NCBI RefSeq assembly: GCF_020745735.1
Contig: NC_083433.1
Location: 6,645,363-6,709,362 of the forward strand
DNA from: Hemiscyllium ocellatum
Lineage: Eukaryota
Reading direction: 5' to 3'
Length of the DNA: 64,000 bases
Shown piece by piece: positions 7,061-36,540 of this stretch. The notes under the pieces are model-generated. The model ran no database searches. It was not told the DNA's origin and saw only the letters and a program-made list of their open reading frames with translations. The position numbers and the translations under genes were made by a program. The number at the start of each line of letters is the position of its first letter. Position 1 is the first letter of the stretch.

Positions 7061-7138
7061 TGATTGACAACGGGCGATAGCCAATCAGCAGTGATGCCTC
7101 TCCCTGGTTGGATGCAGGGTGTCCCAGGAGGATAAATA
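7061..7138 (+). promoter_or_regulatory. Promoter of D: TGATTGACAA-N10-CCAATCAG plus GATAAATA TATA-like box
   Basis: Motifs at 7061-7088 and 7131-7138; position conserved relative to the ATG in the other copies. Confidence 0.7.
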
Positions 7139-7205
7139 CAAAAGCTTGTGGGAGCGAGGCTCAGTTCTAGAGTTGTCTAGGTGAAAGTGAGCAGGAATAG
7201 TGAAG

Positions 7206-10012
7206 ATGGCCTCCCAAGTGTGTCAGAACTACCACAAGGACTGTGAGGCTGCTGTTAACAAGCAGATCAACCTGGAGCTCTATTCCTCCTATGTTTACCT
7301 CTCCATGGTGAGACTTTTATATCTTTTTTTTCTCACTCCAATTTGGAGAAATTGGAGTTTCCCCGGTTTAATGGAATAGTTTAAGCTGTACCCTATTACT
7401 GGGAGGGCAACCATTTTGAGTAGTGATGGGCTTCTTGTTGAAGTTAACATTTAAGTCAATGCTCCTTGTAACAGTTGTTTTCTGTGGGGGTTTAATTCTG
7501 GACTAGCTCAGCTACTTCTTATGTAACTAGTCAACAATGCAACCAGGTTAACTGGCTAGTGATTTAATTAATAGTCCCTAATAGGGTGACTATAGCTGGT
7601 GCAATAGTGAATATGTGCTCATTAATATTCTTCACCTTTAGCTGTAGTTTTGAGATTTCTGATGAGCCTTGCTCCAGGAAGGTATGACATTGATTAGCAA
7701 TGTGAGGGACTAATGTAATTCGCGCGTTCTAGTTATGACACTAGAATGTGAGTAATCAGTAACAACTGCCACTACTGAAGGAAACACTGGTCAGTTTCTG
7801 ACAGTAAACTGTCTCCTCGATGTCTGTTCTCTTGGAGTGAGTTCCACTGTGAACAGCAATGAAGCTGCAAGAAATTCCTCATCCTGAGGACAAGGGGTGG
7901 CATACTCTGACAATAATTTCAGTTTAAAATTACATCTTAAAGTAAACACTCTCGCTTGTCTCAGTGCGACCTGCCCATCAAACGTTAAAATAAGCGTCTC
8001 AAACTTTTTTTAACTTCTGAAACAGAATTGCATATTATGATTTTAAGTGTAATGTGAATTGTTTGATGCTCTCCTCCCACAGTCCTCTTACTTTGACCGG
8101 GATGATGTTGCCCTGCGTCACTTTGCTGAGTTCTTCAAGGAGCAGTCCCATGAGGAACGGGAACACGCTGAGAAACTGATGGAATTCCAGAATAAACGTG
8201 GAGGCCGAGTCCTCCTGCAGGATATCAAGGTTGGATTAATTTAGTGTCTCATCTAGTTCATTAAAATCAACTTCCATCCATATGGATTTGAAGTAATTTA
8301 ACCCTGTTGGTTTATGGCAAGTTTATACTTGTTAGCCCCTCTTTCTCGTGACCAATTTTACTGGATTGGACACCACTTGTAAGAAAGTAACCAATCTTTT
8401 TTTTTCCCTCCAGAAGCCAAAGCAGGATGAGTGGGGCAATGGTCTGGAGGCAATGCAGAGAGCTCTGCAGATGGAGAAGGATGTGAACCAGAGTCTGCTG
8501 GATCTGCACAAACTCTCCTCTGACCACATGGACCCTCATGTGAGTTCCTCCTGCTGGCTTTATCCATGTGATTGAAGTTGTATGAAAGTTACTCAGTTTG
8601 AATCTTAATAACAAGAATTGTATCTCCAACTGAGCATTTCAACCTTTAGGTCAATATCTTTTACCTGAGAATAGTGCTTCACCTTCTCGATACTTCTCTA
8701 AGAAAGAAGTAGGCCACTCAACCCATCAAGTCTGGTCTGATTTTGCCAATCATGGCCGATCTGAAACCTCAACTTTATTTTCCAGCCTCTGTCCCCCTAA
8801 ATCTTGATTCCCTTTGTGTTTTTTTAAATACTAATGTCCCAGCCACAACAACCCTCTGAAGCCAAGAATTCCATAGATTCACTCCCAATGGTTTCCTGTC
8901 TAACCTCTGACCTGAGATCATGCCTTCAGGTCCTGTACGCTCGCTCGCTTACTTACTCACTTTCAAGAAGAAATCCCAATACCACATATACCCTGTGATA
9001 TTCCCAAAAGAATCCTGGGTTTTAGTGAGATCTCCTTTCTTTCTTCTATGCCGAGTACAGGCTTGACCTCTTCCCTTCAAACTATTCACCTATCCCCAGG
9101 GTCACATGCCAGTGACGATGCCCTGAATCTTCCCCTTATCTGCATCCTGGCTAAATAATAGCTGACTATCTTCTCTCTGTTAATGTACGACCTCAACACC
9201 ATGGGCTCTCTATCTTGTCTGAATGTACAATCTCTCTAGACTTTAGATCCCATTGAAAGCAAGTTTTCAGGGCTTGACCCTTGCTGATTAGGAAATGCCA
9301 ACTTGCTGAGCTGTGAGGTGAATGTTTGTGTTGCTTTTAGCTCGGTTCTTTCTGCTGATCCTGAACAAAATCAACTCGAAGCCCCATTTTTCCAGCTGTG
9401 CCAACACTTTAATTCGAGAATCTAACTGCTCCTCTTGCACATTCTGAAACCAAGGCCGGCATCAATGGTGGCAAACCTGTGGCTTTAGGACACTTTAATT
9501 TGGCCTCCATCAGGTCTTGCCCTCTCTTCCCAAGGGCAATTGATTGATGCTACGATGTAGATGAGGTCAATGGGGGAATGCTGAGGTGACAGTGGACACT
9601 ACTGCAAACTTGTAACAAATGCAGACCTGCAAGTGGCTTTCAATATACAATAGGCAGCTTCAGAACAGTTTGTTTTCTTGTACTTTGTAAATCTTAATTG
9701 GGAAATTAGTGACTTGTCGTTTAGTAAATTCCAGTGCTGTGAGGCTTCAAATATCAATCCCTGTCATTGCTTCCCAGAATCACAGTTGATGGAAGTCTCT
9801 CTTTTAAATTCTACCCCATGTAAATTCTCCTTTACATTAACAAGCTCCTCACTTTCATATTCCAGCTGTGTGACTTCCTGGAGAGGCACTACTTGAATGA
9901 GCAAGTGAAGCTGATCAAGAAGTTGGGAGATCACATCACCAACCTGAGACAACTGGAATGCCCTGAGAATGGCCTGGGAGAGTACCTGTTTGACAGGCTC
10001 ACCCTGAGCTGA
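7206..10012 (+). CDS. Ferritin unit D, complete, 173 aa, divergent exon 4
   Basis: Exons 7206-7307, 8083-8229, 8414-8539, 9866-10012; open frame. Exon 4 is [54 protein letters not shown] 10093-10098. Confidence 0.93.
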
Positions 10013-33754: not shown

Positions 33755-36387
33755 GTGGGACTCTGGAATCACTTCATATTGCAGTTTTATCATGTATGGT
33801 ACTAAATTGTGAATTCACTGAATTGCAAATAAAACCTATCATGATCGATCACCTTTTTGTATAATTGTTATTAACTAGATTCATATCTATGGTTCTTAGC
33901 AGCCTGACATGTAAAACTTTTTTTAATTTGCTTTGTCCTTTTTTTTCCTAATTGCCCTGTTCAGGGTTTTTACATGCCTGAAGCACGTGGGACTTGTCCC
34001 TTCCCTGGGGGAGGATGTCCAGACAAGACAACAGCACCATCAGAGCCTGCTCAAACATTAAGTTTCTTGCCCTTCTTAGACTTAGTTTGGTCAATCGTCC
34101 TCATGTGTTAAGCTTATTGAAGTTTTCAGCAACATACAACAGTATCTCATGGGGGTTTTTTAATCACTGTAGATAAATATGTGAACCTGTCAACTATGAA
34201 GCACCCATCTTTCTTTTACTAAGACAGTATCATCAGGAATGTAATCTGCTGTCCTTACCTGGTCTGGCCTAAATACATCCAGGGCTGCACTGCTGTGACT
34301 CTGGAGTTTAAGTGCAGATTTACTCTTTTTTTTTGTCAACTTCCTGCACTCTAGTGTCTAGGGCTGATACCCTCCTGGCTGTAGAAAGGCAGAAAACATG
34401 GACTGCTGTCTGAAATGGTGCATCTGTTCATATTTTTAATATCTTACCTCAAATACAATAGACTCCTCCATTGGAGAAGGGATGGATAGTAGAGATCCTG
34501 AGATTGTCAGGATCAAGCTCCACATGAAACAACAACAATGGAAATAACATTCTTTAAATAGAAGCATCTCATCACTGTACTGTCCATCTCTACCATGTGA
34601 TTAGTTGGTTTAGATTGTGCAGTGGATCTAGTACAGATCCATATCCTTGGACAGTTGTGATCAATATCAGTAACCCTGCCCTCATCTGGATCTGACAACA
34701 GGTGAACCAGTTCAGATGTCATTGTATTCAACATTAAGTATACAGGGAGAAATATCCATTGACAAACTTGTCAAACACTGATGAATTGGGGAGTTCTGAT
34801 CTGGATGACTGATGCTATCAGATTGAGGAAAGTCAAAGCAACTAAAATCCATTTTATTGCTGATGAGATAATTAGGAAGACTGTGTGCATATTGAATAGG
34901 AAGATACCTTTTGGACATGGTTTGGAATCAGGAAGGGCAGGGATAGAGAGCATGGCTACTAACTTTGACAAAATTTGTCTCTTCCCTCCCAGCGATCTCT
35001 GCATGGGCTTCAGTTTCACATTGATAGATCGATTTAGATGAAGGGGAACAAAGAGCTGTATGTCCACGCTTCTGGGAGGCTGGGAGCTGAAAGTTTGCAA
35101 CAAGACATTGTTAAAACGAACAGACAGGACTCAACGTGAGGAAGAGTGAAGCTTTCCGCTTTGGAACGAGAAAGAGAAATCAGTTAAACTGTGACAAGTG
35201 AGGAACTGAAGAGATGGTGGGACTGATCCAGAGAAATTACAACATCTAGTGGAAAAGCCTGGAATACAATGAGCTAGATGTTTGAGTCACACAATCTCTC
35301 AACACAGAAGAGGCCCTTCGTTCCATCAGGTCTGTGCTAACCTGTCTACACTAGTCCCACTTTCCAGCAATTAGCCAGTGGACTTGAACGTAATTACACT
35401 TTGTGTTCCTTCATGTACTTTTTAAAGGTTGTGGCATTTCCCATCTCTATGCCCCTGCCTGGCAGTCCACCCACCCTCTGGGTAACAAATGTTTTCCGCA
35501 AATCCCCACTAAAGGTTAGAGCCCATTCATTAGGGGTAGTGTTCAGAAACACTTCCTCAGACACAGGCACGATACTGAAAATGTAAACCTTGCTCTCCCA
35601 ACTCCTCGGGAATCAATTGAACATTTCAGTCGGAGGTTGTTGGCTGTTGTTATGTAAATGGGTGAAGGGATAGTTAAAGCAATGTAGAAACAGAGCAAGA
35701 GTGACGTGAGAAAAACACTTTTACGCAGAAAGTAGTTAGGCTATGGAACGTGTTTCCTGGAAATGTGGGGGAGGCAGGTTCAATTGAAACATTCAAAAGA
35801 GCATTGGGACAGTAGCAGTGTGCAGGGATATGGAGAAAAGGCAAGAGATGAGCACAATTGGCCGAACAGCCTCCTTTGACACTGAAATTTCTTTATGTTT
35901 ACTTGTGGGAATTGGATGTCAGTGGGCTAGCCCAGCATGTATGCCCGTCCTTAGTTGCCCTCTTGAGGAGGAGGGGGTGAGCTGCCTTCTTGAACCGTTG
36001 CAGCCCATGTCCTGTAGGTTGACCCACAATGTCCTTAGGGAGGGAACTCCAGGATTTTGACCCAGTGACATTGAAGGGACAGCATATATTTCCAAGCCAG
36101 GATGGTGGGTAGTCCGGAGGGAAACCTGTGAGTGGTTTTCCCATGAATCTGTTGCCCTTGTCCTTCTAGATGGTTGTGGATTTGGATGGTGTTGTCTGAG
36201 GATCTTTGGTGAATTTGTGTTGGAATTCTATGATTCTGCGATCTGGAAGAGGGTGGTTTATATGGAATAGAAATGGAAACTAACCAAGGTGTGGTTAAAT
36301 AGTGGAACAGGTCAGAGGGCTTGAATAGCTTCCTCCTGTTCCCATGGTCCTAAATTGTTAAAAAAACCTGCTTAGTTTTACACTGCG

Positions 36388-36540
36388 CTGATTGGCTCTG
36401 GTTTGTACATAGCCTCCCAATACCTCTCTCTAATTAGTACCTGGATTCACAGGAGATTCCTGAATGGTAATCCCCAATAGCCAATCATTATTGCTGATAA
36501 CATTTCCTGTTGGAATGCAGGATTCCCATTGGTATAAATA
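36388..36540 (+). promoter_or_regulatory. Promoter of I, essentially identical to H
   Basis: CTGATTGG 36388; CCAAT 36481-36485; TATAAATA 36533-36540. Confidence 0.72.

Follow-up and report, generated by a model that had tools for sequence, protein, structure and literature searches.

The promoters of a ferritin H-like gene array in the epaulette shark Hemiscyllium ocellatum were examined in a 64-kb stretch of contig NC_083433.1 (positions 6,645,363 to 6,709,362), hereafter referred to as the window, and positions are counted from its first letter. These promoters share a 27-bp block that carries a CCAAT box, and we consider it probable, based on a comparison of shark promoters, that a conserved forward quasi-palindrome was flipped in place in at least two lineages. 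The interpretation of the blocks of copies H and I in the window and of one copy from Chiloscyllium plagiosum (locus L001) as in-place micro-inversions is well supported by sequence comparisons, and copy D appears to be inverted in part.

The 27-bp block in the ferritin promoters

The window contains ferritin H-like genes of four exons each, arrayed head-to-tail. A promoter and exon 1 are present in ten copies (D to M), and the pieces A, B, and C lie upstream without a promoter and exon 1 inside the window. A search for TGATTG-N15-CAATCA with one mismatch at most yielded nine matches, all on the plus strand, versus an expectation of 0.43 and a maximum of two in shuffled sequences, and a tenth, degenerate copy was found in M. 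The spacer was 15 nt in 10/10 copies, all of which fell in one column block of the promoter alignment, with GATTCC to the left and TCATTGGTGATG followed by CCCAGGAGGATAAATAC to the right. The flanking hexamers, the constant spacer, and the kept orientation of the flanks, as described in the original prediction, were confirmed by this pattern search and alignment. The block occupies the same place in each promoter, approximately 145 bp before the exon-1 ATG and 45-70 bp upstream of the TATA box.

All ten blocks lie on the plus strand of the window. The forward state is represented by the block of E (13157-13183), in which a minus-strand CCAAT box (ATTGG) is located at 13159-13163, 70 bp before TATA. 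The blocks of G (25926-25952), K (50466-50492), and L (56824-56850) are forward with one point change each, those of F (20801-20827), the promoter of which was shortened by a deletion between the block and TATA, and J (44924-44950) are forward with two, and that of M (61837-61863) is forward with a degenerate right arm (CAGTGA). The 15-bp core that was originally attributed to E, G, J, K, and L alike is exact in E only, with a difference of one base in G, K, and L and of two bases in J. The block of H (31850-31876) reads as inverted, with a plus-strand CCAAT box at 31870-31874 (also at 31863-31867), 52 bp before TATA, and the block of I is identical to it and ends at 36487 rather than at 36486 (36461-36487). 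The block of D (7061-7087) is a mosaic with a plus-strand CCAAT box at 7081-7085 and with arm positions 7, 9, 19, and 21 flipped. Candidate TATA-like boxes, recognized by their sequence, are GATAAATA in D (7131-7138, plus strand, 75 bp before the ATG at 7206) and TATAAATA in H (31922-31929, plus strand, 72 bp before the ATG at 31994).

The block is better described as one 27-bp quasi-palindrome than as two 6-bp repeats and a 15-bp spacer. The block of E is self-complementary at 18/27 positions and the form found in the catshark and white shark, TGATTGGCTATCAGGGATTGTCAATCA, at 20/27, and the ancestral-form block folds into a hairpin of 11 pairs closed by a loop of 3 nt (-4.9 kcal/mol, the top 0.4% of shuffles). 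Since the block is a quasi-palindrome, its forward and inverted readings differ only at positions 7, 9, 13, 14, 15, 19, and 21. In the forward block, a true minus-strand CCAAT box (TGATTGGCT, which is AGCCAATCA reverse-complemented) makes up the left half, and the CCAAT-like GTCAATCA makes up the right half.

Orientation of the block among sharks

The total sample consisted of 43 promoters from seven species, 33 of which lie beyond the ten in the window; copy A, from locus L005, was counted in the total. The other loci were from C. plagiosum (L001, L006, and L010), Stegostoma (L002), Rhincodon (L003), Chiloscyllium punctatum (L004, L008, and L011), and the outgroups Carcharodon (L007) and Scyliorhinus canicula (L009). 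The query for the shark ferritin search was a stop-free stretch with exon 2 of copy M and was followed by exact-protein locus look-ups. When orientation was mapped onto these species, as had been proposed with the original prediction, the forward state was found in 39/43 promoters, including 5/5 Carcharodon and 2/2 Scyliorhinus copies, and in nearly all of the copies sampled, which represent three shark orders, the CCAAT box of the block lay on the same strand. The four non-forward promoters comprised three from the window (D, H, and I) and one from C. plagiosum (L001, ATG at 10001). Considering the forward majority and the forward state of all outgroup copies, the forward block was probably ancestral in galeomorph sharks, and this form is conserved in carpet sharks, the white shark, and the catshark.

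Orientation was scored using a position weight matrix (PWM) built from 26 forward blocks, with forward blocks being scored leave-one-out. As reverse complements, D gained 17.9 bits, H/I 18.4 bits, and L001 24.8 bits, and forward blocks became 18.5-43.8 bits worse. The probability of a gain of at least 17.9 bits in randomly substituted forward blocks was 5e-6 with 6 changes, 1.7e-4 with 9, and 1.3e-3 with 12. Regarding the seven informative positions, forward blocks have the forward state at 4-7 of them and the inverted state at no more than one, and the numbers of forward/inverted states are 1/4 in D, 1/5 in H/I, and 0/6 in L001. Among the forward-forward control pairs, 0/703 were more alike inverted than forward.

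The strongest single item for inversion is the match, at the level of sequence, between H/I and a forward variant of C. punctatum (L004 and L011), TGATAGGCTATTGGGGATCATCAATCA, which agrees with the reverse complement of H/I at 23/27 positions and with the forward reading at 15/27. The derived, subfamily-specific 13-mer GGCTATTGGGGAT is exact in both the H/I reverse complement and this variant, and the reverse complement of L001 has GATCATCA in common with the same variant. The L001 block is 63% identical when read forward and 81% when inverted, with its flanks being 83% identical. Subfamily-specific substitutions that are carried as a reverse complement are predicted by inversion, but not by convergence on a CCAAT box.

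Two further features of micro-inversions are also present. The better match as a reverse complement, confined to the arms in D, is accompanied by collinear flanks, which were forward on both sides throughout in MAFFT alignments of 31 and 41 promoters, and by abutting inverted repeats, which read TGATTG...CAATCA in forward copies and D and TGAATG...CAATCA in H/I. The spacer of 15 nt compares with a length of over 15 nt for excluding chance in a previous study (PMC8755829), and only seven positions are informative; the significance of the inversion call is derived from the family-wide conservation of these positions and not from length.

Several points weigh against the inversion explanation. 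Since only seven positions tell the orientation, each single case rests on a few characters, and the center of D is not inverted. Within the window alone, the shuffled-control test envisaged in the original prediction did not give a significant inverted-minus-forward excess for the 15-mers (P 0.15 for D and 0.12 for H/I); the inverted match by itself was unusual (P 0.006 and 0.003, respectively), and the match counts previously given against the E core were right (6/15 forward and 9/15 inverted for D; 6/15 and 10/15 for H/I). The proposal of a micro-inversion was, thus, insufficiently founded on the window and gained support once other species were added. A strict before/after pair of orthologues with opposite states was not found among the fetched loci, and contigs from two related species span the H block, the orientation of which could not be read from the contig tables because these omit weakly supported differences near contig ends. 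Moreover, the hairpin is weak, and 6-bp arms are on the short side for a template switch with two jumps (PMC8755829).

A reading without any inversion is regarded as unlikely. In this reading, point substitutions under selection would have broken the left CCAAT box and completed the right one (G7 -> A and T21 -> C, with tuning at positions 9 and 19), and palindromy together with the NF-Y flank consensus would produce the better inverted match as a side effect. The consensus is self-complementary at 18-20/27 positions, and the two transitions are enough to shift the CCAAT pentamer, which selection could in principle have moved across the palindrome together with some tuning of the flanks. Copy D, with its forward-like center, is nearly as close to its forward relatives (best match 20/27) as it is when inverted (22/27; its flanks are 84% identical), and the 15-mer test in the window is consistent with this reading. 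However, the complementation extends to the loop (positions 13-15; CCC in H/I and CCT in L001), where a requirement for CCAAT does not account for it, and substitutions would not be expected to place the subfamily-specific 13-mer in the H/I reverse complement. The random-substitution simulations seldom attained the observed score gain, the L001 block has a higher identity inverted than forward, and the flipped pattern recurs in at least two lineages.

It is very improbable that the blocks of D, H, and I result from an assembly or consensus error. Tandem arrays are hard to assemble, but C. plagiosum L001, from another species that was assembled independently, has a flipped block as well, and H and I carry it twice. 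Furthermore, contigs of the same species from a second study cover 31835-31921, and no differences were listed there.

Number of events and possible mechanism

The original prediction regarded D and H/I as one class from one event, which is at odds with a tree of the flanks. This tree, for which the block was masked and approximately 150 columns were used, was largely unresolved; in it, H/I formed a long branch of their own (0.34 changes per site), and D and L001 were weakly paired (47/0) within a group that was not resolved. None of the bootstrap flank trees united D, H, I, and L001, and the approximately unbiased (AU) test rejected one clade (p 0.004). This rejection implies at least two flips, or one flip and the later transfer of the block by short-tract conversion. 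The inversion probably happened more than once. At least two lineages would carry the flip: one is H/I of the epaulette shark, and the other comprises the C. plagiosum copy and perhaps D.

A single old inversion, from which the flipped block spread to other copies by short-tract gene conversion, appears improbable to us. The 11-base stretch ATAGCCAATCA, which is identical in D, H/I, and L001, and the 12 bases GATAGCCAATCA common to D and L001 would be consistent with such a history, as would the starred branches of the flank tree, which alone are compatible with one origin. On the other hand, the three flipped blocks differ mutually at 7-10/27 positions, and their reverse complements are each most like another forward variant. 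A single clade is also rejected for the flanks by the AU test, which would, however, not register a conversion confined to the block.

The polarity of the recurrent inversions that we prefer rests on the family as a whole (39/43 forward, with all outgroup copies) and not on an orthologue pair. The C. punctatum copy at L004 (ATG 6805) was considered as the orthologue of D and rejected because of its identity of 77.7% over 1.7 kb, versus 91-93% for clear orthologues (e.g., F and L006); relative to D, it is the reciprocal-best older paralogue and the nearest forward relative. An orthologue of H/I, which was sought via cluster members, was absent from the fetched loci. L004 and L011 are located on C. 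punctatum CM104985.1 (95.13-95.18 Mb), where a multi-gene unit is repeated as a segmental duplication; the unit consists of three E-like copies and one D-like forward copy, and matching promoters are nearly identical between the loci.

Copy D, which had been taken for a clean inversion, is flipped at its four informative arm positions, but not in its center, GGGCG. The arms contribute +11.3 and +9.8 bits to the PWM gain and the center -3.2 bits. The arm mismatches persist as complements (G7/T21 -> A7/C21 and T9/T19 -> A9/A19), which fits inversion and not the homogenization of the arms, whereas the center is in neither the forward nor the inverted state and resembles forward CGGGG variants. 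We interpret D, with less confidence than H/I and L001, as having flipped arms and a second change in the center, which may have been a nested re-inversion or a multi-nucleotide change. The combination of an outer inversion with a nested re-inversion of the center gave 24/27 against the catshark-like forward block in a hand count; it was not retained because it involves too many free choices.

Regarding the mechanism, the segment between the outer 6-bp inverted repeats, TGATTG and CAATCA, would have been reverse-complemented in place by replication template switching or by microhomology-mediated break repair at these repeats. The signs expected of template switching in particular, namely, arms long enough for two polymerase jumps and a tendency of imperfect arms to become perfect, were not observed: the perfect arms measure 6 bp, and the mismatches of the inner arms were kept and not homogenized. 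Microhomology-mediated break repair has been reported to account for short or imperfect arms better than a template switch with two jumps (PMC8755829).

Human-chimpanzee microinversions of 17-33 nt were all flanked by inverted repeats of 3-75 nt, approximately half of which were 4-7 nt (PMC8755829), and many mutation clusters have been explained by short template switches (PMC5453318). As in these cases (PMC8755829; also PMC5453318 and PMC7954356), approximately 15-27 nt are reverse-complemented in place in the shark promoters with collinear flanks, and the boundaries of the block abut perfect 6-bp inverted repeats, within the commonest arm class of 4-7 nt. Unlike the human-chimpanzee cases, the shark segment is itself quasi-palindromic and only seven positions change, old paralogues were compared in place of a clean orthologue pair, and a conserved promoter element was hit recurrently. 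In yeast, the inversion of a spacer by template switching is recurrent and reversible (PMC8604942). The shark blocks resemble this system and bacterial quasipalindrome correction in that the spacer of an inverted repeat flips and the resulting multi-nucleotide changes mimic clustered substitutions; they differ in that inner arm mismatches are kept in complementary form and not homogenized. The yeast spacer inversions needed arms of more than 9 bp and spacers of 2-5 bp, in contrast to arms of 6 bp and a spacer of 15 bp in the sharks. Small "flip-flop" inversions of hairpin loops between short inverted repeats also occur in chloroplast non-coding DNA and are homoplasious across phylogenies; the shark locus differs from these in being nuclear, in a vertebrate, and inside a promoter element.

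Micro-inversions between short inverted repeats are a recognized, but under-detected class of mutation that is usually catalogued genome-wide without known consequences. The shark flips are a new instance of this known mutational kind in an unusually informative setting, in which an identifiable, conserved regulatory element was hit inside a tandem array with the other copies as built-in controls. They are also a warning for alignment-based work, since an inversion that is read forward resembles a cluster of 7-12 substitutions.

Promoter architecture and the ferritin array

Each gene of the array appears to have a small TATA promoter and to lack an iron-responsive element (IRE), and its main upstream element would be the 27-bp quasi-palindrome of two opposed half-sites. 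Nearly all CCAAT pentamers within 175 bp are on the minus strand in forward promoters, at approximately -70 and -43 from TATA and often with a third near -100, and a plus-strand CCAAT is additionally present in only two forward copies. Flipped promoters have a plus-strand CCAAT at -50 to -53 from TATA, and H/I also have one at -59. As judged from the blocks themselves, the flip moves the true CCAAT box from the minus to the plus strand and approximately 20 bp nearer to TATA (from -70 to -50), and the GTCAATCA/TGATTGAC half-site is on the distal side after the flip; the original prediction was correct on this change of strand and order. The second minus-strand CCAAT box (TCATTGG, approximately -43) is present in roughly three quarters of forward promoters and was lost in all three flipped lineages, by a 3-bp deletion in D (7088-7100) and as ATTGC in H/I (31877-31890) and GTTGA in L001 (about 9882-9895). 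This loss could be compensation or chance.

The CCAAT box has the consensus flanks of an NF-Y site (AGCCAATCA), on the minus strand at -70 in forward promoters or on the plus strand at -50 in flipped promoters, which suggests NF-Y as the factor that binds the block. NF-Y-dependent promoters with multiple CCAAT boxes include the B-box of mammalian ferritin H. The shark promoters resemble this class in the apparent placement of AGCCAATCA pentamers 40-100 bp upstream of TATA, with two to three boxes approximately 27-30 bp apart, and differ from it in that the forward boxes are nearly all on the minus strand and a single site, on the plus strand, lies between the ancestral positions in flipped copies. 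The asymmetry and stereo-positioning of NF-Y have been described previously (PMC3730095).

Flipped and forward copies may differ in expression, as suggested by the two promoter classes of the original prediction. One RNA-like run yielded only a spliced exon 2-exon 3 contig, which was not copy-specific. The array represents a natural experiment on whether the strand of CCAAT and its shift by 20 bp relative to TATA matter. A more far-reaching view, which we hold to be rather doubtful, is that the quasi-palindrome acts as an evolutionary flip-flop switch, in which recurrent, reversible inversions between the 6-bp arms are selected for differing expression. If so, the second architecture, with a single plus-strand CCAAT at -50 and without the -43 box, may have been kept for expression in a different tissue or stage, and the switch would operate within an array that is more than 200 million years old.

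Upstream of the block, one or two extra copies were observed of a unit of approximately 67 bp beginning with CTGATTGGCTCTGG, with two copies in L (56720-56823) and M (61730-61836), and the block region appears to be the most proximal of a short series of tandemly repeated, CCAAT-bearing units. F-type promoters have a deletion of 10-21 bp between the block and TATA (20828-20865 in the window), which is common to copies of C. plagiosum (L006) and C. punctatum (L008) and places two ATTGG boxes at -50 and -23. This lineage was amplified in Chiloscyllium, with five copies in 44 kb of L006.

Large, ancient ferritin arrays have already been reported in sharks (10.1101/2024.09.09.611499). The exon-1 ATGs of D to M in the window are at 7206, 13304, 20928, 26061, 31994, 36605, 45058, 50612, 56961, and 61983. 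In D, H, and I, the exons are open, and the flipped promoters, thus, belong to apparently intact genes, in contrast to the broken genes of E and J. In copy E (14070-14204), exons 1-3 contain a frame break and numerous replacements and exon 4 is clean, and copy J has an in-frame stop within exon 2 (GG*VLL, 46766-46912). H and I arose by a recent tandem duplication of approximately 4.6 kb (31400-36600); their promoters and first introns are approximately 99% identical, and their leaders are of a distinct type common to both and unique to them, with a run of nine Ts (31960-31993 in H). A search of the whole 64 kb against Rfam at gathering thresholds found no RNA family, which indicates that no ferritin leader there has a recognizable IRE. 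The leaders are approximately 45 nt long, and the 5' leader IRE of IRE-regulated ferritin genes was not found in them by this search.

Fragments of retroelements are located between the ferritin genes, with long open frames at 3752-4096, 11163-11555, 18387-18848, and 39372-42055 and reverse-transcriptase-like text (e.g., ...YRPVSLTS...). Just upstream of H, contig depth at 31400-31570 was hundreds to thousands of times that of neighboring bins in all four runs, with many alternative contig joints, and this segment is a high-copy interspersed repeat.

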